64,000 nt of DNA, from positions 156,259 to 220,258 of the forward strand of contig NW_005434593.1 of assembly GCF_000315625.1 (NCBI RefSeq), given 5' to 3'. The first letter of the stretch is position 1; every line of letters begins with the position of its first letter. Under the pieces are notes generated by a model, which saw only the letters and a list, made by a program, of their open reading frames with translations, made no database searches and was not told the DNA's origin. Origin of the DNA: Guillardia theta CCMP2712 (taxonomy: Eukaryota; Protista; Cryptophyta). This document shows, in pieces, positions 6,101 to 23,319 of the stretch. Position numbers and translations under genes: made by a program.

Positions 6101-6580
6101 GAGGCCGAGGACGTGGATGACGCTGTCGGCGTAAGCCCGGCGCTCGTGCTGGGAGCACTGGGAGTGAGGGATGAGGAGGTCGGCGGCGTAGTACATGGTC
6201 TCGCGGACGGTGAAGGGGGTCTGGAGGGCGTACTCCTGCTGGACGTAGGAGGCGATGGAGCTGAAGGCCTGGTTGCGACGATCTCCGTTGACCAAGACTT
6301 CGCCCTTGAGCGTGCGGCCCTTCTTGGAGCCGTCGATCCTGCCGGCGATGGCGTCGAGGAGGGTGGTCTTGCCTCCGCCGGAGGGGCCGCAGATGGCGAG
6401 CATCTCGCCGGGCCGGACGATGCCGGAGATGTTGTCGAGGATGCGCTTGGTGACGAGCTCGGACTTGTTGGAGGAAGGGCTGGTGCGGCGGACGCGGACG
6501 TCGTAGGTGATGCCGGTCCATGCGATGGTGGCAGGGCGGACCTTGAGGGAGAGCTTTCCGGAGGAGGAGGAGGGGGAGGA
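2662..6580. repeat. Left arm of a ~3.9 kb inverted segmental duplication
   Basis: GAATACTTTCTCCTCGTAGG... at 2662 is the reverse complement of ...CCTACGAGGAGAAAGTATTC ending at 12429; ORF-track entries are mirrored throughout. Confidence 0.97.
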
Positions 6581-6778
6581 CTCTGCTTCACTGAAAGAGG
6601 GAATCGGTCAACATCGAAGTAGATCCATGGAACGTCATGAGAAGAGGGAAAGAGCTTACGTTGGGCTCGACCACGTGTCTTGTGAAGTTATTGCAGCAGG
6701 GGGCACCTGAACATTGCTGTCCGTGCCAAAGACGAGATCCGCGGGCTCCATGGGAACAACGTACTGCGTTCTTTGCAT
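4775..6778 (-). CDS. ABCG (White-family) half transporter, copy A; exons 6778-6660 and 6590-4775
   Basis: Walker A GPSGGGKT, signature LSGGQ, Walker B LLLDEPTSGLD, CTIHQP, NBD-then-TMD order. Exon 1 (MQRTQYVVPMEPADL...) splices in frame through a 69-bp GT-AG intron. Confidence 0.95.
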
Positions 6779-8225
6779 ATTTTTTCAAGATGTCTGGTGC
6801 CGTTGTCAGTTTGTTGTGTATGTGCTGGCTTCACCAACAGATGAATGGTCGAGATGTGAGGGGAGCGGAGGAGGACGTGAAGAAAGAGAGATGTAGAGGA
6901 CTGAGCGTAAGGAAGCAGGTCTTCCGACTCCTCTTATATAGTGGCAAGCCTTCTCATTTCCGTACCCGTCGCTTGACTTGCTCGCATTTCAGCAGGGGTA
7001 GGGTGACTACCCAACCAAGGAGTTCCAGGTGAACAGTAGGGGTCCGCAGAGCCACACGTATCATTGAGGTAGGGGAGGGTGGCAGGGGTCCAACGAATAA
7101 CTGTCTGAGACCCAAAAGTTGACTTTTTTTTTAGTGCCGGGACCCCTCCCCCGCAGTCACTTACTGGCAACGTCCGCTCCTGTCAAGTGACTCGACTTTG
7201 ATGAGTAAATCTTGCCGGTACAGAAGAGCTGGGCGGAGAACCCGGGAGATCTCGCGACCATCCACCCCTTTGAGTGCCGCAGTGTCCCTGAGGGGGGGGA
7301 AGGGGGGGGTGGTTGTGGGGGGATCGGTGGGTACTTCAGATTGAGGGTCTGCTGCCGTTTGACTGGTGCCGTACTCGATGCCACGGCAAAGTGAAACGAC
7401 CCCGGACCCCCGGAATGACTACCCACCGTCACCATATCAACAACCCTGTCCACAAGGCTCAGATGTACCCCTTCCATAGTGTTTTCGACCTGTACTTACC
7501 CCCCCCCTCCCCTCACCCCCGATTCACCCCTTACGCCTATGATTCAAGTCAGCTACTGTCACAGACCGCATCGGTAACCCCTACCCCCCACGTACACCCC
7601 CACCACCCCCTCTTACTGCCAACTTTTGCACCTCGAGATGGCATCGAGCACGCCAAGTTTACCCAAGGACCCCCTGGGGTCAGACCACCCTGTCATTTTC
7701 TTAGCCCTACCCCTACATACTACCTAGAATCACCCCCATACTATCACCACGTAACAGACCCCCCCCACCCCCAGTGAGGAATTACTGTGGAGCTAACTTA
7801 CAACCATGAAAGTCACCTATAGATAATGTGCCTACAGCAACCCCCACCCCCTGGGAGGAAATTATACATATCCCTTCACCGGTACATTTACCTAGAATGG
7901 GACCGGTGTTGTACAGGTTTTGTGGGACCCCTACCCTTTTACCTGTAAAGGGCGAGATGAGTCCGGTCAATAAATCCCCTACCGCCTCCTCTTGTTTATC
8001 GACGTCCCTTCCCTTCCCCTCCCTTCCCCTCCCCTCCCCTCCCCTCCCCTCCCTTCCCTTCCCTTCCTTTCCTTTCCCTTCCCTTCCCTTTCCTTCCCCC
8101 TCCTTCTCAACGATACTCTTCCACACTCCCTCCTCCTGCCCCAACAGCGTTGCCCTAAAAGAAGCGACCAAGATCGAGCAGCAGCAATAGCACCTGCTAC
8201 CTGAACGCTGGACCCAACTCTCAGG

Positions 8226-10319
8226 ATGTCTGGAGAGCAAGACAAACAATATGTCATTCCCATGCAGCCCGCGGATCTCGTCTATGAAACGGACAGCAAT
8301 GTTCAGGTGCCCCCTGCAGGAATGATTTCACAAGACACGTGGTCGAGCCCAACGTAAGCTTCTTAACCATCTCCTTCTCAACGCTACTCCCACATATCAT
8401 ATGACAACCCTTCTGAGATTCCCCATGCCTGATCCCCCTATATACCTTCCTGATTTCCTGAATTTTCTTTGAAGTATTCGACCTGACGCTTACGTTGGTA
8501 TAGTAGGACGGACTCCTTCCCCTCCTCCTCCTCCGGAAAGCTCTCCCTCAAGGTCCGCCCTGCCACCATCGCATGGACCGGCATCACCTACGACGTCCGC
8601 GTCCGCCGCACCAGCCCCTCCTCCAACAAGTCCGAGCTCGTCACCAAGCGCATCCTCGATAACATCTCCGGCATCGTCCGGCCCGGCGAGATGCTCGCCA
8701 TCTGCGGCCCCTCCGGCGGAGGCAAGACCACCCTCCTCGACGCCATCGCCGGCAGGATCGACGGCTCCAAGAAGGGCCGCACGCTCAAGGGCGAAGTCTT
8801 GGTCAACGGAGATCGTCGCAACCAGGCCTTCAGCTCCATCGCCTCCTACGTCCAGCAGGAGTACGCCCTCCAGACCCCCTTCACCGTCCGCGAGACCATG
8901 TACTACGCCGCCGACCTCCTCATCCCTCACTCCCAGTGCTCCCAGCACGAGCGCCGGGCTTACGCCGACAGCGTCATCCACGTCCTCGGCCTCGACTCGT
9001 GCAGCAACACCATCGTCGGCGATGTCTTCAGGAAGGGCCTCAGCGGCGGTCAGCTCCGCCGCCTCTCCATCGCGGTCGAGCTCGTGCGGAGCCCCTCCAT
9101 CCTCCTCCTCGACGAGCCCACGTCAGGCCTCGACTCGGCGGCTGCAGAGAACATCATGAAGCACCTCTCCTACCTCGCCAAGCTCGGCACCACCGTCGTC
9201 TGCACCATCCACCAGCCGCCCTCGGAGGTCTGGGCGAGCTTCGACAAGTTCTGCCTCCTGTCCGAGGGCAAGTGCCTCTACTTCGGATCCGCCAGAGACT
9301 CGGTGGAGTACTTCGGCAGGCTGGGGCACCCTTGCCCCTCCCTCTCCAACCCCGCTGACTTCTTCCTCCGCCTCGCCAACACCGACTTCGAAGGCCATGC
9401 CGACGTCAGCGCGCTCGCCTCCGCCTTCACCAGCCAGCCCGAGGGCATGTCGCTCATCGCCGCCATCGGCCAGCCGATCGAGCACGAGGTGCTGGTGGCA
9501 GGCACGGCCAACGGCTTCTGGTCGCAGCTGCTCACCTTGTCTCATCGCGCCTTCTTCAACAACGCTCGCAACCCCGGCATCTTCCTCGTCCGCCTCATCA
9601 TGTACGTCATGCTGTGCGCGATGATCGGGTTCATGTTCTGGAAGCTGGGCATCGAGGCCTCGGACATCAACAGCCGCATCACCATGCTCTTCTACGTGGC
9701 TGCGTTCCTGGTCTTCATGTCGGTTGCCGTGCTGCCCTTCTTCATCCTGGAGCGAGCGGTGTTTCTGCGAGAGCGAGCCAACGGCTGGTACATGGTCCCC
9801 TCCTACGTGCTGGCGACGTTCCTCATGTCGCTGCCGGGGCTCTTCATCATCTCGCTCATCAGCACGGCCCTGGTCGTGCTCCCGTCGGGCCTCAACGGCT
9901 TCGGCATCTTCCTGGCCGACCTCTTCCTCTCCCTCGTCGCCGCCGAGGCCTTCATGTGCGTGGTGGCGTCGGTGGTGCCGCACTACATCATCGGCATCGC
10001 GCTGGGGGCGGCGGTGTACGGCTTCTTCATGCTGTGCGAGGGCTTCATGAAGATCAAGTCCGACATCCCGGACTACTTCATCTGGGGCTACTACATCGCG
10101 TTCCACACCTACTCGTTCCGGGTGTTCATGGTGAACGAGTTCGAGCCCATCAAGCATTTCAACAGCCTGCAGTACAGTGACGGGAAGGCGGTCTTGGACT
10201 TCTACGACATGAGCGACAAGCCGGTGTACAAGGACCTGAGCATCCTCGCGGGGTACGCGCTGGGGCTGCAGCTGATCTTCGGGATGATCCTGCAGGTGTT
10301 TCACAAGGGGAAGCGGTAA
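8226..10319 (+). CDS. ABCG (White-family) half transporter, copy B; exons 8226-8353 and 8507-10319
   Basis: Same motifs as copy A. Exon 1 (MSGEQDKQYVIPMQPADL...) splices in frame through a 153-bp GT-AG intron with a CTGAC branch site. Confidence 0.95.
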
Positions 10320-14740: not shown

Positions 14741-17700
14741 ATGGGGCGCGGTGGGGGCGGTTGCTACACGGGGAAAGATGAGAAGACGGGGAAACTGACA
14801 GCAAGGAGAAGGGAATTCGATCCTATCCCAGAGCCACCCTACAGGATGTCGACGGTTACGGAATGCCGGAAGGATTTTGAGGTGAATGGGATCTCTTGCT
14901 GTTGTCCAGAGATGTTCTGAAGCGTTATCAGAACTCTGTGTTGCTTCGGCCTTTCCACAGAGAAGCATGGTTCACTTACGTGCCTGGTTAGTACTGTCAC
15001 CCTTGGTTCCTGCCCGCTGAACTTTTGTTACAGAGATGCTCCTCCTCTGTAACGAGGCTGCGAAGAGAAATGTCAGGAAGAGCATATCGGTGCCAAAGGA
15101 GAATGCAGACGGGCTTCTTTCGAAACCACTAGGGCTGGAGTACATAGCAGACCGTGTTGATACGGACGATCCTATCCAAGGGTATCTTGTAAGGACGAGG
15201 GATGAGGGCTGGCTGCAAGGGTTCATCACTGTGACGACATTCACAACGTGGCATCGTGAGTTCGAATGGAACTCACTCGTGCAAGAGGCGGGGATAAGCG
15301 ACGAAGACAAGCAGAACCATCGTTGGGATTTCGATGGATCGCTAGCCAAGGAGTTGCAGAAGCAGAAGCGAGTGGGAGATCCGCATAGGGAAGGGATCGT
15401 ATGGAAGAGGTACGATGCTTCTTGTCTTGCATGCAATCCTGACGCCAAGTGGTCAGGTTGGCTGAGGTCTCGTTGCTTGGCGCCTTGGGCTGCGGATCGC
15501 AGCTGTTGCAACTTGTGATGGAAGACCTGGAGCAAGGGGATGAGTACGACTACATCATTCTACAAGCCACAGACAACGCCATCAGTTTCTATGAGAGGAT
15601 GGGCTTTGTGAGAGTCGGGGCTATCGCGCGACCAGATCAAAATTTTCTGAATCGCAAAGGGAAAGTTTCCACAGGGGAGAAGCCGGGAGTTGGCAACAAG
15701 AACAAGGAGGAGGCTGTCACGATCAAGAGAGAGAAGATGAAATTTCGGCGAGAGAAAGTCACTGCCTCTTATGACTGGCGTCCTTTTTGTGTCAAAGTTC
15801 TCAAGCATCTTCTCACACTTCCCGAGGCGAAGGTAATCAAGGACTCAAGGCCGAGTGCCTTCAAGTTTGAGCAACAGCGATGCCTAGACTTGCAGTCGCT
15901 GGTCGACGCGCTGAGAGACAAGGAGTCTGAGGAGCAGAAGAAGATGATGCAAGAGCACCACGAGTTTGATCCGACCTCCTGGATGAAAACCGCATGGATC
16001 TCGAACTTCACTAATGCTGAAGATGTCTCGTTTGAAGTGCAGCTGCTGCTGAACTCCTTTAAGAAGGACCCAAATCTCAACGAAACAGTGAAGTCCGCTG
16101 CTCAAAGTCTTCTTGACTCGTTTTGCAAAGCTTGGAATAGCTTTGGAGATGATCTCGTCACCGATGGAAGCCAGGGCGAGAAGTACACTCCCAAGAAGGC
16201 CGGAACAAATCACACGCCCACCAAGAGCGCAAGGTTGAGGGAGAGTGCAACGAAAGAGGAAGAAGCTTCGAAGATGGGTAAAGACAACCAATTCTATGTG
16301 TACGTCGACATCGAGTGGAGGGAACAGCGAGGGTTTCGACTTTATGAGATCGTTGGCAAGCTCAACGGATCAGGTTCGGGCAAGTTCACCCTTGACCTTT
16401 CTCAACTTCTCCACCCTCTCCTCTACATCGGACTCTAGTAACATTTTCTTCACAGCAAATAAGCAGTCGGGAAGCAAGGGATTGCTCAACGTGAGGGAAT
16501 GGTATTCGGCCAAGGAGCTGGAGCCAGCGGAAGGAGCAGATCGAGACAACCTCCCCTTCCTCCCCAGGTCGGCGAAGGCCAAGAAGATGCAGTGGTCTCA
16601 GCGTCGCTGTGTAGATGGGATCTTGCAGACAGCTTCGCTACCTGTGGCTGTCAGAAGCTGCCACAAGCAGCTCGACGGGAAGAGAGTGGACTATATCGAA
16701 GTGGAAGATCAGTGCCTGAGAGTCACCATGGCGTACGCGAAGCTGATGGCCATCCGCGGGATCGAGAGGTTCGAGCGCTACGGCGACGGAGGATATGGTG
16801 ATGACTGCTGCTGTGTGAGATTGACCCGGGTTGACCGCTTGCTCCCTTGCAGACTCGCGATGGGATGGGGAAGGATCGGGGTCGCCGGATGACACGAAGC
16901 TGAGCGAGTACGAGTTCAAACGTCTCCAGAGGATGCAGGAGAACGAGCGACTGATGAAGGCGACGGGGATACTTGACCATGAGCAGAGCGTCACTCAGGG
17001 GTCGAGCTCTGAGAACGAGGATGCAGCTGATGCTCATGACGACACTTGCTCCAATCGCAAGCAGGATGCGATGCTGGGAGATTTGAACGACGTGCGGCCA
17101 AGGAGTCAGTCACAGTCGATGAACGGGGAGGAGTCCGTGGACTCGGATGGAACGACAGACAGCGCGCAGAAGCCCCACAGGCCCCAGAAGAAGCGGTTCT
17201 TGCCCTTGGATTCTCATGGGAGCCCAAAAGTTTTTCGCTCACTGGACATGGACAGCGTTAGTAGCCAGAGCAAGAAGAAGTTTGTTGCAGAGGAGGAGAC
17301 GAGTATCAAAAAGATTGCGGAAGAATGCCACGTCAAGCTTGATCGACTGCTGCAGATCAACAGGGTGAGGAGGAATGGGAGGAGGAGGAATGGAGGAGGG
17401 GGAGGAGGAGGAGGAGGAGAGGTAGCTCACTGTATGACAGGGCAACTTTCCCGATCTTCATCAGTACTCGATCATTCCCGCTGGGACAGTTTTGCAACTT
17501 CCTCGACCTGGGGAGGTCTGTGAATTCATTCCGAAGAAGAAACTCCCCCGGGCTCCGACGGGATGGTCAGGTTACTGTCACTGGACGTACCCCGACCAGT
17601 CCATCGACGAGCTTTTTCCAAGCTACATGATGGTAGGGAATCGTTTGTGTGTGCCTAGAACGACGTTAGGGTACTGGGTTGATGTGGTTAGTGTGGAGTA

Positions 17701-18298
17701 CCGGGTACTCGTAAGTTGTTGATGGGGTACTGGGTCAGTGGGGTGTGACCATGACTCTGCTTTCATGTTGTCTCTGATGTGATTCGCCGTTGTAAGTCTT
17801 TTTCTCACCTTGTCCGATCAGGCCAAGAAGATCATCAGAGAGAAAGACGGCGTCGTGAAGCAAGCTCCTTCGACGCTGAGAAAGATGTTGGTTGACTGTC
17901 CTCCTCCGATCGTCTCCACCAAGGAAATCCAGCAGGTCCGGAAGATCTCAAAGCTCAACAGTGAGTTCTGGCAGGAGCAGCACTCCTCCATGCAGGATGG
18001 GGAGGAGCAGGAAGCTGCAGCCTGCTCGTGGCCAGTGAACGGAATTTACTGCTGCCTCCAGAACGAGAGAGCGGAGGATGTGGCCAAGAAGTTTCGGGTG
18101 GATGCGGATCGCTTGATCTTCGTGAACAAGCTCTTGAACCCTCAGCTTGAGCAGAGGAGGGCGTTCAAGGCCGGAAGCAGCGTTGTGCTCCCCCTCCACC
18201 CGTCCTTGGTGGAGCAGCAAAATTGGATCAAGGACTGTGTGGAAATTCTCGACCTCCTGCGCCAGTCCCAGTGAGTCATCCAAAACTCAGCCCTCCTG

Positions 18299-18335
<37 letters not shown>

Positions 18336-19036
18336 GGCTCCGGTCCCGGTTCCGGCTCCGGCTCCGGCTCCGGCTCCTGCTCCGGCTCCGGCTCCGGCTC
18401 CTGTTCTGCTCCGGCTCCGGCTCTTAGTTCACCATTCGCCATAGCCTCGCCCCCTTCTGCTTGCCGACCATCAACCCCCCCCCCCCCCTCCTCCTCCGCC
18501 GCTCTCCAATGTGCACATCTCCTCTGTCTGCTTTCCCGCTCAACCCGCAGCTGTTCGTCGCTCCTCCTCACTGGACCTCAGGCATGCGCTGCACTTCGAG
18601 GCACCCGTAGAGTGGAGGAGAATGAAGCTGTTCGAGTACCCCTTCATCGTCACTCAGCCCACAGACCTCGGGACTGTGCAGATGCGCCTCCTGGCCGGTC
18701 ATTACGCAACTCCGGAGGATTTTGCGGAGGCGACGATGAAGATTTTCTTCAATGCGATCGTGTTCAACAACACCCCCAACGATACCTTCCGCAAGATGGC
18801 GAACAAGCTGATGAGCAACTTCGAGCACCGCTGGTCGAAGATCTATCCTCCCCTCTCTCCTGCCATCCTGGGCGATCGATCCAAGAAGGTTAAGTTCTTC
18901 AACAAGGTGACAACTCGATTCCCGTCTCTCATCCCTCCCTTGTTGTAGCCCGCTTTCTGATAGTGGCTCCTGCCTCTGATATACTCTCCTGCTCCTGCTC
19001 CTGCTCCTGCTGCTCCTGCTGCTCCTGCTGCTCCTG

Positions 19037-19086
<50 letters not shown>

Positions 19087-20913
19087 CCTCCCTGCTCGTC
19101 ATGTTCCTGACATCCCATCGAAGGTCGTGAAGCTAGAGGATGAGTCGGCGCTTTTCTACTTCGTGCTCCACTACGTCCCCGACCTTCACTGGTGTCACCT
19201 TGCTCCGATGCAGCGCGATGGGCTCGTCCCATACCAGAACAAGCAGGGGAAGCCCAACGCGTACGCGGGTCACACCAAGTGGAAGCTCGTGCCTGAAGGA
19301 GAGGCCGAGGAGATCGATGTCAGCGGCTTCCGCTGCATCCCCGTCAGGTGGGTGAAGGGGCATGATAGCAGGAGGCTGGCAGCTTGGCGAGGGAGGTGCT
19401 GACAGGGGCTAGGGAGTAGTAGAAAATGAATTGGGAAAGGATGAGGGGAAGATAAAGGGAGGGGGAGGAGGAGGAATGTAAAGCGAGGGAGGTTGGGCGA
19501 GGTAGAGGAAGGGAGGCAGGTGTAGACAGGGGACCGAGGAAGGGAAGGGGATACAGCAGGAGTCTCTGACAACGTATTGGCAGGAGCGTGACGGTGAACA
19601 AGACAAAGAACGCTGACCTGGAGGCCTGGGTGATCCTCGGGGAAGGAGGAGGAGAGGGACAGGAGATGGACGTGCAGAGCAACACGCAGGAGTCAGCGGA
19701 CTGCGAGAGCGAGGAGGGCAGGCGTTGCAGGAAGATCGAGAGAGTCCCGGCGAGACTGCAAGAGGAAGGGGGGCGAGCGGAGTGTGCAAGAGCGCTGAGA
19801 AGGATGCTGGCAGATGCAGCTTACAAGTTGAAGACACAAAGGGGAAGGAGGTCGGTGGAGCAAGAGGGTCTGCGCTTGCGCCTCAAGGGCTTGGCGGAGC
19901 AGGAGGACGAATTCGAGGACGCGAGCAGTTTCGTGCAGGCAGTTCTCGATGCGATGACGACAACAGTAGCAGGACTGAGGAGAAACAAGGAGAAAGAGAA
20001 GAGGAAAGCCATGCTGACGTATCAAGCTTTCCATAGCGCCTGTGAACGGCTCTCTTGCTTCGACGAGATCTCGTGCCTGTTTGATCCCAAGCTGGTAAAG
20101 GACGGGCACGGGGACGAGGAGGACCAGGAGGAGGTGGTGGATGCTGATGAAGACGAGAGCGATGACGGCAGCTTCGGTGAGGACAGTGGAGGAGACGAGA
20201 GCGAGGATGGAGCTCGGGAGGGGGGAGGCGAGGGGGACGAGGACATGGAAGATGGCGCAAGGGCTGGGTCATCGGAGGGAGAGGAAGGCGAGAAAGGGAA
20301 TCCAGATGGAGTGGGAGAAGAGCGGGAGAGAAGGAAATCCAGTGCTGAGGATTCGGAGCATGGCAAGGGGAAAAGGCAGCGGGGCTACAACGAGGACAAG
20401 GACGAGGACGATCGAGTCCTGGGTGACATCGAAGAGGAGGCAGAGAATGACATTGAGGAGGGGGGGTGCGGAGACGAGGAGGAGGAGGAGGAGGAGGAGG
20501 AGGAGGGTGGGGGCAAGGGAAACTCAAAGGCAGCAGGGAAGACGAAGGTGAAGGTGAAGGTGGAGGAGGGCGCACCCGAGGACAGTGAGGACAGGGAGGA
20601 GGAGGGCGAGGTGGAGTACACCACCAGGGAGAATGAAACTCCAAGGATCATCGCTGCAATGCTGAGGGTCAACTTAGACCGCGTCCTGGAGCTGAATCGC
20701 AGCAAATACCCCCAGCTGGTCCCTTGCTCGCGTTTCCGCCGAGGGACGAAACTGTTGCTCCCCATGTCAGCGACGGAATCGCCCAAGGGGAAGGAGCTGC
20801 TTGCGAGGAAGCGGCTGGTGAAGATCTCGAAGCGCGGCAGGAAGCACAGGGGAGATGGAGAGAGGAGGAGAGGGGGCAGGAGGGAGGAGTCAGGTGGGAA
20901 GTTGAAGGTCTGA
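14741..20913 (+). CDS. Multi-exon chromatin protein: GNAT acetyltransferase + bromodomain(s) + three LysM-like repeats + acidic tract
   Basis: GNAT ([17 protein letters not shown]...[16 protein letters not shown]); bromodomain (HFEAPV...[15 protein letters not shown]...FFNAIVFN); LysM-like repeats at ~17280, ~18045, ~20615; [15 protein letters not shown] motif; GT-AG introns join the frames. Confidence 0.85.
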
Positions 20914-21014: not shown

Positions 21015-21114
21015 NNNNNNNNNNNNNNNNNNNNNNNNNNNNNNNNNNNNNNNNNNNNNNNNNNNNNNNNNNNNNNNNNNNNNNNNNNNNNNNNNNNNNN
21101 NNNNNNNNNNNNNN
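21015..21114. other. Assembly gap (100 N); others at 32248-32347, 36352-36451, 39217-39316, 41878-41977
   Basis: N runs, mostly next to low-complexity DNA. Confidence 1.
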
Positions 21115-21564: not shown

Positions 21565-22618
21565 TCACATCGTATGATGGTTGCGGTTCAAGTAGTTGAG
21601 GACAGGCACTTCCTTTCCCTCCTCGCAGAACACGATGGGGAGGAAGACTTCGGTCAAGCTACAGTTGTCGACTTTGAAGACGAACTTCTTGGAGGTGTCG
21701 GAGACGCTGAAAAGAGCCTTGAGGAGGAGGTCAAGGAAGTCAGAGTGCGTCACGACGATGAGAGGAGAGCCCCTCTCCTCTGCTGGTGTCTCCACCACCC
21801 TCCTCTTGATCCACGACGCGAACTTCTCCGCCCTCTCCCGGTTCTGCTCCGCCGTCTCCTTCCCGACCAGCTCGTTCCATGAGCCCTCCTGCTCACCGCG
21901 TCATCCCCTCACTGCTACTTCCTCCTCCACCTGCTTCAGCAGTTCCGTGCGGCAGAAAGGAAAGCGCTCCCTGATTGCTGCAGCCGACAGCCCAGCGGCA
22001 GGGAGGTACTTGCCATCCTTCCACTCGTACATCCCCCCGACCTCGCACGCAAGAGGCGACACCCTGCACGGGATGCCGAGCGCCATGGCGATGGGCGCAG
22101 CCGTCTCGATGGCTCGGAGCATCGGGCTCGACATCAGCTCGCCTCCCTCCCCCAGTATCCGCTTGATGTGCTGCCCGGTCCTTATCGCTTCTTCCTTCCC
22201 TTGCGGGGACAGGCCAGGGTCTACAGATCTGGACGCAAGCCAGGTTGATGTTGCCTTGTGAGGAGGGAGGCTCGTCAGTGAGAGCGCACATGCTGGTGGA
22301 TCGAACCTGTTCCGCAGTCAACCTCCCTTTGCGCATCTCTTCTTCCACCTGCCCCGGATACTTAAAGGTTGCAAGACAGTTCACGGGAGAGGACAAGCTG
22401 TGGTCATGACAACAAGGCATCTGTTTCTAAATGTCCCTCCCTCTTAATTTCCTTCTCCTCCTCCTCCTCCTCCTCCTCCTCCTCCTCCTCCTACCAACAA
22501 CTCTCTTACTCTGACTCAGTCCGACAAGAACGTTGCAGTCCGCAAGCATTACCTGCAGTTGGATGCAGTTGTTCATGGACTGTGCATGCCTGATGAGAAT
22601 CAGCGATCTGCCTGCCAT
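21565..22618 (-). CDS. Histidine phosphatase / phosphoglycerate mutase family protein (multi-exon)
   Basis: LILIRHAQS (RHG-type motif), SSPMLRAIETA, LIVVTHSDFL, DNCSLT; a 42-bp intron removes the stop at ~21901. Confidence 0.85.
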
Positions 22619-23319
22619 GCTCGCCGCTGCCTCTAGGCGGAAATGACGCCGCCATCCCGCTCCTGCTCGAAATCGCTGCAGCACCATGCTGGATTCTTTG
22701 ATTTAGCGTTGATTGCGATGTTTTCACATTAAATTTAGCCATTTGCATTAAACATAAGAAACAATTCTCTATTTAGTGCTAATGTGTAACCCCACTTTGT
22801 TGCAGTACACCCCCTGAACATTTTTGTACCGGTACTTTTCTCTTTCACTACCCCACATTTTCATACCCAGTTCTCATTATTTCACATGACCACCCCTTCA
22901 AAGTCCTCACCCACCGGTGTGATTCCATAGAACTCATCGAAGCAAACCTGCTTCCCAGGGGGGTCCTAGGTCTTCAGATAATGGGGTGATGGGTATGACC
23001 GGTTATACTGATGTGCTATTTGACCCGAAATTTTCATTATAAACAAAGGGGTGAACAGAGGACCTGGGATATTTAGTGGGTGGGGGTACTGTTAAAGGGG
23101 GTAGCTGGAAGGTGAAACTTGCCAGAGCATGCCGGAGGAGATTTTTATCACAATGAAACGAGGGGAGGAGAGAGGGAAGGGAAGGAGGAGGAGGGGCAGG
23201 AGGAGGAGAGAGGAGAAGGATCAGGGTCAGTATCAAGAGCAGGAGCAGGAGAAGCAGGAGCAGCATGGAGGAGGAGGAGGAGGAGGAGGAGCATCAGCTT
23301 CAGCAGCAGCAGCAGCAGC

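Follow-up and report, generated by a model that had tools for sequence, protein, structure and literature searches.

Textbook accounts present the LysM domain as a binder of peptidoglycan and chitin that works outside the cell. Intracellular eukaryotic examples exist as well, among them OXR1 and NCOA7, in which LysM is combined with GRAM and TLDc domains. The animal LYSMD proteins (LYSMD1–4) and Rab32 guanine nucleotide exchange factors are reported as a case of intracellular LysM that acts via protein partners (PMC11289520). In the canonical domain, a stretch of N-acetylglucosamine (GlcNAc) in the arrangement GlcNAc-X-GlcNAc is bound edge-on in a groove between the β1–α1 and α2–β2 loops, with about four sugars touched, mainly through backbone hydrogen bonds to the N-acetyl groups; an Asn at the end of helix 2 has a structural role (PMC4083421). 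A 64-kb stretch of the genome of the cryptophyte Guillardia theta CCMP2712 (C81:156259–220258; hereafter the window, to whose numbering and plus strand all coordinates refer unless stated otherwise) contains a gene at 14741–20913 that is predicted to place this domain in a different setting. The locus reads as a single spliced gene joining a GNAT acetyltransferase domain, a bromodomain and three LysM domains in one protein.

All parts of this protein are known, and the presence of a GNAT and an acetyl-lysine-reading bromodomain in one polypeptide is the writer–reader logic of GCN5 and PCAF. The window protein departs from these enzymes in several respects: its GNAT is not GCN5-like by sequence, approximately 800 residues lie between the GNAT and the bromodomain, and it additionally carries three LysM domains, an SH3-like barrel and a long acidic region. 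It resembles LYSMD1–4, OXR1 and NCOA7 in the apparent use of LysM within the cell, where a GlcNAc polymer is not expected, although those proteins are devoid of catalytic and chromatin domains.

The LysM repeats are located at 17281–17364 plus 17441–17503 (LysM 1, split by a 76-nt GT–AG intron at 17365–17440), 18044–18193 (LysM 2, within exon 8) and 20614–20766 (LysM 3). All similarity searches were performed exon by exon. A subfamily profile was based on an alignment of 11 repeat sequences (A1), and the bit scores of the window repeats were obtained with a profile built only on repeats at other loci, the window rows being left out. LysM 3 scores 66.2 bits (E = 7e-21) and LysM 2 scores 47.8 bits (E = 4e-15), and LysM 1 yields 13.3 bits for its first half and 9.2 bits for its second, the halves adjoining exactly at profile position 31, the site of the intron. 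Searches of the genome (87.1 Mb in 669 contigs, with spliced genes) with repeats 3 and 2 returned paralogous repeats, with best E-values of 1.6e-10 and 5.3e-6, respectively. The paralogous repeats at C287:9509–9655 and C4:524705–524848 exceed the Pfam LysM cut-off, as do sister repeats in L001 (22.2 bits), P0004 (33.1 bits) and P0005 (31.4 bits).

The LysM pattern is evident in A1, with the Asn after helix 2 invariant in all 11 sequences. When the A1 profile was compared with the PDB, the top of the ranking comprised only LysM chains (4uz2, E = 2.4e-9; Ecp6, 4b8v, 6.6e-7; MltD, 1e0g, 1.7e-4), and further matches were to LysM receptors and transpeptidases. The AlphaFold2 model of repeat 3 (20608–20772; predicted local distance difference test score (pLDDT) of 93.9) has the β-α-α-β order (E-H-H-E) of secondary structure elements. 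Its first 30 or so Foldseek matches are all LysM domains, with TM-scores of 0.65–0.75. In a VIA-align comparison with 48,161 representative chains, 4uz2 ranked first (Z-score of 7.2 and root mean square deviation of 1.7 Å over 48 residues), with further matches to CEBiP (6.9), SleL (6.8), the LysM of a Volvox chitinase (6.4), Ecp6 (6.2) and AtlA (6.1); nearly all of the 24 chains at Z ≥ 5 are LysM. Language-model neighbours of repeat 3 in the Atlas fall into LysM clusters in 26 of 30 cases. By profile and by model, the window repeats are therefore assigned as real LysM domains of a divergent subtype. The sequence-only reading of this locus had proposed three LysM-like repeats and had named a non-LysM fold as the outcome that would count against them; the profile scores agree with it for all three repeats and the modelled fold for repeat 3. 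SAP and LEM were considered as identities for the repeats and ruled out, profile and fold both being LysM.

The subtype departs from the canonical domain in both loops of the sugar groove. Before helix 1, G-D-T-L is replaced by (D/N)-E-T-P, and the α2–β2 loop is approximately six residues longer than in the Pfam model or in 4uz2 and carries a conserved aromatic-Pro-x-Leu motif. Fold, buried Asn, hydrophobic core and occurrence in tandem copies are shared with the LysM (CBM50) domains of bacterial wall hydrolases, Ecp6, CERK1 and CEBiP. Unlike these, the window repeats are predicted to be intracellular, have no signal peptide ahead of them, and have chromatin-type domains rather than hydrolases or kinases as partners. 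The human LYSMD-type LysM 2djp is a weak structural match to repeat 3 (Z-score of 3.4) and is not matched by the subfamily profile.

The GNAT core named in the sequence-only reading marginally exceeds the Pfam Acetyltransf_10 cut-off of 23.6 bits (24.8 bits, E = 2.3e-5), and a search of NCBIfam gave no match for it. Its N-terminal half is encoded by exon 3 (15034–15409) and is 41–60% identical to the homologues P0001–P0033. The C-terminal half (15457–15640) contains the acetyl-CoA loop G-x-G-C-G and motif B; this loop and the motif-B signature aromatic-Y-E...G-F are invariant columns in the family alignment, and the cofactor motifs of the window GNAT are intact. The bromodomain (18215–18906) reaches 38.3 bits with PF00439 (E = 1.3e-9; threshold 21.7). 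Exon 8 closes with its first helix, exon 9 supplies the remainder, and between them lies a GT–AG intron (18271–18581) that carries a (GCTCCK)n microsatellite. In a paralogue of the window gene (L009, on contig C14) a single open frame encodes the whole bromodomain, which matches PF00439 at E = 1.3e-13. The N-A-x-x-(Y/F)-N motif is present as N-A-I-V-F-N, so that the acetyl-lysine-anchoring Asn is kept in the predicted protein, again as first read from the sequence.

The gene belongs, as judged from sequence comparison, to an uncharacterised GNAT family of cryptophytes, haptophytes and ochrophyte algae. A word search with a 553-residue open frame of L009 retrieved 33 proteins, and a profile of six sequences retrieved 286. 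Named members come from the diatoms Epithemia, Amphora, Cyclotella, Mayamaea and Odontella, the bolidophyte Triparma, the pelagophyte Chrysophaeum, the haptophytes Chrysotila and Prymnesium, and the cryptophyte Hanusia; examples are Cyclotella cryptica HJC23_002426, Triparma retinervis TrRE_jg4644, Chrysophaeum taylorii CTAYLR_003159, Prymnesium parvum AB1Y20_023024, a Chrysotila carterae ‘LysM domain-containing protein’ and a Hanusia phi transcript. Their names are automatic: ‘hypothetical’, ‘LysM domain-containing’ and, in one case, ‘Histone acetyltransferase’. Pfam detects GNAT, LysM and an HMG box in diatoms and Triparma, GNAT and a bromodomain in Chrysophaeum, GNAT and LysM in haptophytes, and GNAT, two LysM domains and a bromodomain in the environmental protein P0105. 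The HMG box or bromodomain occupies the same position across the orthologues, and in every full-length homologue (exon-wise blastp with P0001–P0033) the order is GNAT, LysM, a conserved C-H-W...S-Y-M-M motif, HMG box or bromodomain, and beta barrel. One or two LysM domains of the window subtype were found in 100 of 148 retrieved family proteins. The subtype is a fixed part of an acetyltransferase family common to cryptophytes, haptophytes and diatoms.

The window gene is thus not unique but a member of an existing, unannotated family. The architecture, for which the sequence-only reading knew of no characterised protein, is no one-off, and the survey of algal proteins that it had recommended yields the same domain order in diatoms, a bolidophyte, a pelagophyte, haptophytes and cryptophytes. 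With its family the window protein shares the GNAT subfamily (at the identity given above), the LysM subtype, the motif, the barrel and the order of domains. It differs in having three LysM domains rather than one or two, and a bromodomain where diatoms have an HMG box; it is further set apart by a long acidic region and by inserts, helical and beta-rich, that are specific to cryptophytes. The closest orthologue, P0001, is an environmental protein of 925 residues that shares the GNAT, helical and beta regions. It is without LysM, so the number of LysM domains varies within the cryptophyte-like branch; the shared regions are followed by a short Cys/His motif, C-G-x-C-...-G-H-x-C-P-G-Y, and by a long tail of low complexity.

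The same LysM subtype is present elsewhere in this genome beside other chromatin-type domains. The A1 profile has 24 matches in the genome, and the open frames surrounding them were examined with Pfam. LysM is accompanied by two bromodomains on contig C26 (L003), by two bromodomains and a WW domain on C34 (L013), by Pre-SET and SET domains on C83 (L007) and by an Agenet domain on C4 (L006); the GNAT paralogue on C14 (L009) is also among these loci. On C287 (5000–14000; L005) a C-terminal LysM is found with a RING domain and a segment that looks MBD-like by eye, and on C43 (500000–509999; L012) a C-terminal LysM is found with an MBD domain just under the cut-off (E = 4e-4). A 1,041-residue frame on the minus strand of C35 (27000–36000; L004) has LysM beside a ubiquitin-like domain (E = 8e-14) and ends in an AWS domain and the beginning of a SET domain; LysM, ubiquitin-like and SET2-type domains form an unusual combination. 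Frames around the matches on C94, C5 and C19 have no partner domain detectable by Pfam. The C83 frame has an identical counterpart in the protein P0145 (760 residues, JGI transcript-type contig), in which LysM (69 bits), Pre-SET and SET share one open reading frame. In a homologue search with the LysM–SET frame L007, the matches were P0145 and otherwise only G9a-like SET proteins, so that the evidence for joined LysM and SET domains comes from this genome.

In this one alga, a distinct LysM subtype thus recurs in predicted proteins with chromatin writers and readers (GNAT, SET, bromodomain, Agenet and MBD). A chromatin-like context of LysM, which the sequence-only reading had put forward, is seen in these partner frames and in the HMG boxes and bromodomains of the orthologues. 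The recurrence in chromatin-type genes, together with the algal enzyme family, points to a nuclear use of the module that appears to be undescribed; no description of LysM as a module of chromatin proteins was found in the open-access full-text literature, which does not prove its absence from the literature as a whole.

We consider it probable, on balance, that the window protein is a nuclear chromatin acetyltransferase in which LysM serves as a shared docking module for a nuclear partner. The enzyme would work in the nucleus, acetylating lysines of histones or other chromatin proteins, and the bromodomain would hold it on already acetylated chromatin, in a writer–reader loop as in GCN5. The LysM units and the barrel would direct the acetyltransferase. 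The LysM units, with their fold kept and their ligand groove remodelled, would act as a docking module through which this and other chromatin enzymes reach the same nuclear partner, and this partner might be a protein or some N-acetylated ligand, rather than cell-wall glycans. A docking module is favoured because both groove loops are changed, because a single O-linked GlcNAc (O-GlcNAc) would be a poor ligand even for canonical LysM, and because animal LYSMD proteins provide a precedent for action via protein partners (PMC11289520).

Several results weigh against this assignment. The Pfam model PF01476 gave no match at E ≤ 10 on the exons and the excised repeats, and a six-frame genome scan with it found nothing inside the window gene. 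The GNAT has no near relative among the solved histone acetyltransferases: the best PDB sequence match of the GNAT family profile is PaiA (1tiq, E = 0.0019), and GCN5 and PCAF chains are absent at E ≤ 1 from the comparison of this profile with all PDB sequences. The survey of partner domains comprises open reading frames, which are not verified gene models except in the case of P0145, and nuclear targeting rests on the partner domains and on a basic tail read by eye.

If docking to one nuclear ligand is correct, the LysM subtype would represent a lineage-specific chromatin-targeting layer in ecologically major algae and a concrete, testable handle on the role of LysM inside eukaryotic cells. 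Should it be merely a protein–protein adaptor, a widespread family of ‘hypothetical’ proteins would still gain a useful annotation. Diatom orthologues occur in transformable species.

An alternative, which seems unlikely, is that the LysM units are nuclear glycan readers, recognising O-GlcNAc on histones or on the polymerase tail, or a GlcNAc oligomer, and coupling sugar marks to acetylation; we know of no nuclear GlcNAc polymer, which counts against it. It draws on the LysM fold and family, on the retention of two residues, the structural Asn that ends helix 2 and the Thr of the β1–α1 loop, and on the presence of three copies per protein, which would allow avidity as in bacterial LysM arrays (PMC4083421). 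However, canonical LysM needs GlcNAc-X-GlcNAc and contacts about four sugars, not one (PMC4083421), the lengthened α2–β2 loop with its own aromatic-Pro motif constitutes half of the groove, and acidic residues or Asn stand in the place of G-D in the G-D-T loop. The sequence-only reading had suggested that LysM might read O-GlcNAc marks; given the canonical need for a GlcNAc-X-GlcNAc stretch (PMC4083421) and an α2–β2 loop about six residues longer than in canonical LysM, that suggestion is left unsupported.

It is distinctly unlikely that the protein acts outside chromatin, with the GNAT acetylating a small or non-histone substrate such as an amino sugar or a polyamine, and LysM delivering a glycan substrate as it does for bacterial wall enzymes. 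In its favour, PaiA (E = 0.002), the only solved sequence relative of the GNAT, is a polyamine acetyltransferase, enzymes acting on GlcNAc polymers are the classical fusion partners of LysM, and no part of the family is more conserved than the pairing of GNAT with LysM (100 of 148 proteins with one or two LysM domains). Yet an HMG box or a bromodomain forms the third conserved partner, the window protein is, by eye, without signal peptide or membrane segment, and the same LysM subtype stands beside SET, Agenet, MBD and paired bromodomains in this genome.

A further reading, to which we give little credence, is that the subtype constitutes a new class of chromatin reader. Its remodelled groove would recognise a nuclear N-acetyl group, be it acetyl-lysine, the N-acetylated sugar of a chromatin protein, or a modified base. 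In the canonical domain, backbone hydrogen bonds and a pocket for the methyl group retain the N-acetyl groups of GlcNAc. If LysM were such an N-acetyl reader, the GNAT would write a mark that the bromodomain and LysM both read, and the LysM proteins with SET, Agenet, MBD or paired bromodomains would be recruited to the same mark.

The locus 14741–20913 yields one frame-consistent model of 11 exons and ten GT–AG introns, with zero internal stops and a length of 4,866 nt (1,621 codons plus stop). The ends of this model coincide exactly with the bounds given in the sequence-only reading. Frame was checked from the phase of each exon, and only junction codons were translated. An exact-sequence scan for a transcript of the window gene among metagenome and transcriptome contigs, a collection that may lack records of this genome, returned zero matches, which says nothing on expression. 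Exon 1 (14741–14913) contains the start Met and a conserved N-terminal motif matching the N-termini of the paralogue and orthologues, and exon 2 (14961–14986) is a 26-nt mini-exon, flanked by AG and GT, the translation of which aligns with contiguous sequence of the paralogue L009. Because the exon 1 donor (GTTCTG) is weak, making this junction the least certain one, and because exon 2 rests on the paralogue alignment, the 5′ end is the least certain part of the model. Exons of 26 nt of this kind are easily overlooked by gene callers, and the introns at 14914–14960, 14987–15033 and 15410–15456 are all exactly 47 nt long.

Exon 4 (15457–16373) begins with the C-terminal half of the GNAT, and the residue numbering of the homologues (blastp) runs continuously across the 15409/15457 junction. 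Exon 5 (16456–16797) forms part of a beta-rich region. The end of exon 6 (16853–17364) and the start of exon 7 (17441–17632) encode the first and second halves of LysM 1, exon 8 (17822–18270) contains LysM 2 and the first helix of the bromodomain, and exon 9 (18582–18906) contains the rest of the latter. Exon 10 (19124–19347) encodes the first part of the SH3-like barrel, and exon 11 (19584–20913) encodes the end of the barrel (to approximately 19640), a helical stretch, an acidic region, LysM 3, the basic tail and the stop codon. The introns on either side of the bromodomain exon (18271–18581 and 18907–19123) are full of (GCTCCT/GCTCCG)n microsatellites, with a GC content of 0.61–0.67; such introns are open in several frames and resemble Ala-Pro- or Ser-Cys-rich coding sequence.

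The paralogue L009 is collinear with 14756–19680 of the window and has fewer introns than the window gene. A single open frame of 553 residues contains the C-terminal half of the GNAT, the helical unit, the beta region, a LysM and the conserved motif, and another of 448 residues contains a LysM, the bromodomain, the barrel and the helical region. The single gene is supported by the frame-consistent junctions, by these collinear frames and by the same order of parts in the predicted orthologues. That the locus is instead two or more genes or an assembly chimera, with the combined architecture nonexistent, is scarcely credible: a weak exon 1 donor in a gene model read from DNA alone, long low-complexity introns and an N gap just downstream speak for it, but all ten junctions are GT–AG and in frame, the paralogue holds GNAT with LysM, and LysM with bromodomain and barrel, in uninterrupted frames, orthologues of other lineages have the same order within single proteins, and P0105 combines GNAT, two LysM domains and a bromodomain.

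Directly after LysM 1, the protein contains the motif C-H-W-x-Y-P-D ... P-S-Y-M-M (17534–17635), which is 45–60% identical in diatom, pelagophyte and other orthologues and so spans cryptophytes to diatoms. It was found by regular expression in 64 of the 148 family proteins and corresponds to no Pfam family; it may be an extension of the LysM unit.

The SH3-like barrel (19124–19347 and 19584 to approximately 19640, split by an intron at 19348–19583) is 40–44% identical to its counterparts in diatom orthologues. Its AlphaFold2 model, calculated for the contiguous copy of the paralogue with 12 sequences, is a small SH3-like barrel (pLDDT of 87.9). Structural matches comprise the KOW domains of Spt5 and NusG (Z-scores of 7.6 and 7.5), the MRG15 chromo-barrel (6.6), the SGF29 Tudor domain (6.3) and PWWP (6.3); these values of 6–7.6 are too low to tell true relatives from domains of similar fold and indicate the fold class only. 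Foldseek returned only weak KOW/L24 matches. The conserved beta unit is accordingly modelled as an SH3-like barrel of the Tudor/KOW fold class. Of the BAH or Tudor-like unit suggested from the sequence, the Tudor alternative is retained at the level of fold class, and BAH is ruled out by the modelled fold.

The beta-rich region (16292–16797), formed by the end of exon 4 and exon 5, is common only to the window gene, L009 and P0001, as matched by tblastn and blastp. Preceding it, a first helical unit (15755–16153) is plausible as a degenerate bromodomain on sequence grounds. Together with P0001 it aligns with a bromodomain profile over 103 columns (hhalign probability of 57%, E = 1e-4), and the bromodomain Y-N pair is replaced by K-D; alone, against a three-sequence bromodomain profile, it reaches a probability of 9%, the value of 57% being obtained only once P0001 is added. 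It has no Pfam match, and an Atlas search gave nothing above 0.82. A second helical unit (19741–20106) shows no similarity to the three-sequence bromodomain profile (hhalign probability of 0.06%). The two degenerate bromodomain-like units of the sequence-only reading thus fare differently, the first with moderate support and the second with none, and its plural ‘bromodomains’ reduces to the one established by Pfam.

By composition of the translation, 19741–20600 comprises a helical stretch followed by a long acidic low-complexity region. The C-terminal tail and stop codon (20780–20913) follow LysM 3; the tail is basic and resembles a nuclear localization signal, and the N-terminus has no hydrophobic leader and the protein no membrane segment. 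These features, read by eye from the translation, match the earlier description of a protein with a basic tail and no signal peptide.

An N gap (21015–21114) lies between the window gene and its downstream neighbour on the minus strand (21565–22690), which has the look, by eye, of a histidine phosphatase of the phosphoglycerate-mutase type, with an R-H-A-Q-S motif in its first exon. Downstream of the paralogue (L009:6200–9000, corresponding to G000:C14:460200–463000), a block of approximately 1.5 kb is present twice with identical open frames (6322–6984 equalling 7822–8484, and 6984–7361 equalling 8484–8861), and includes a second bromodomain at 7389–7967; the repeat may be a genuine tandem duplication or may stem from the assembly.

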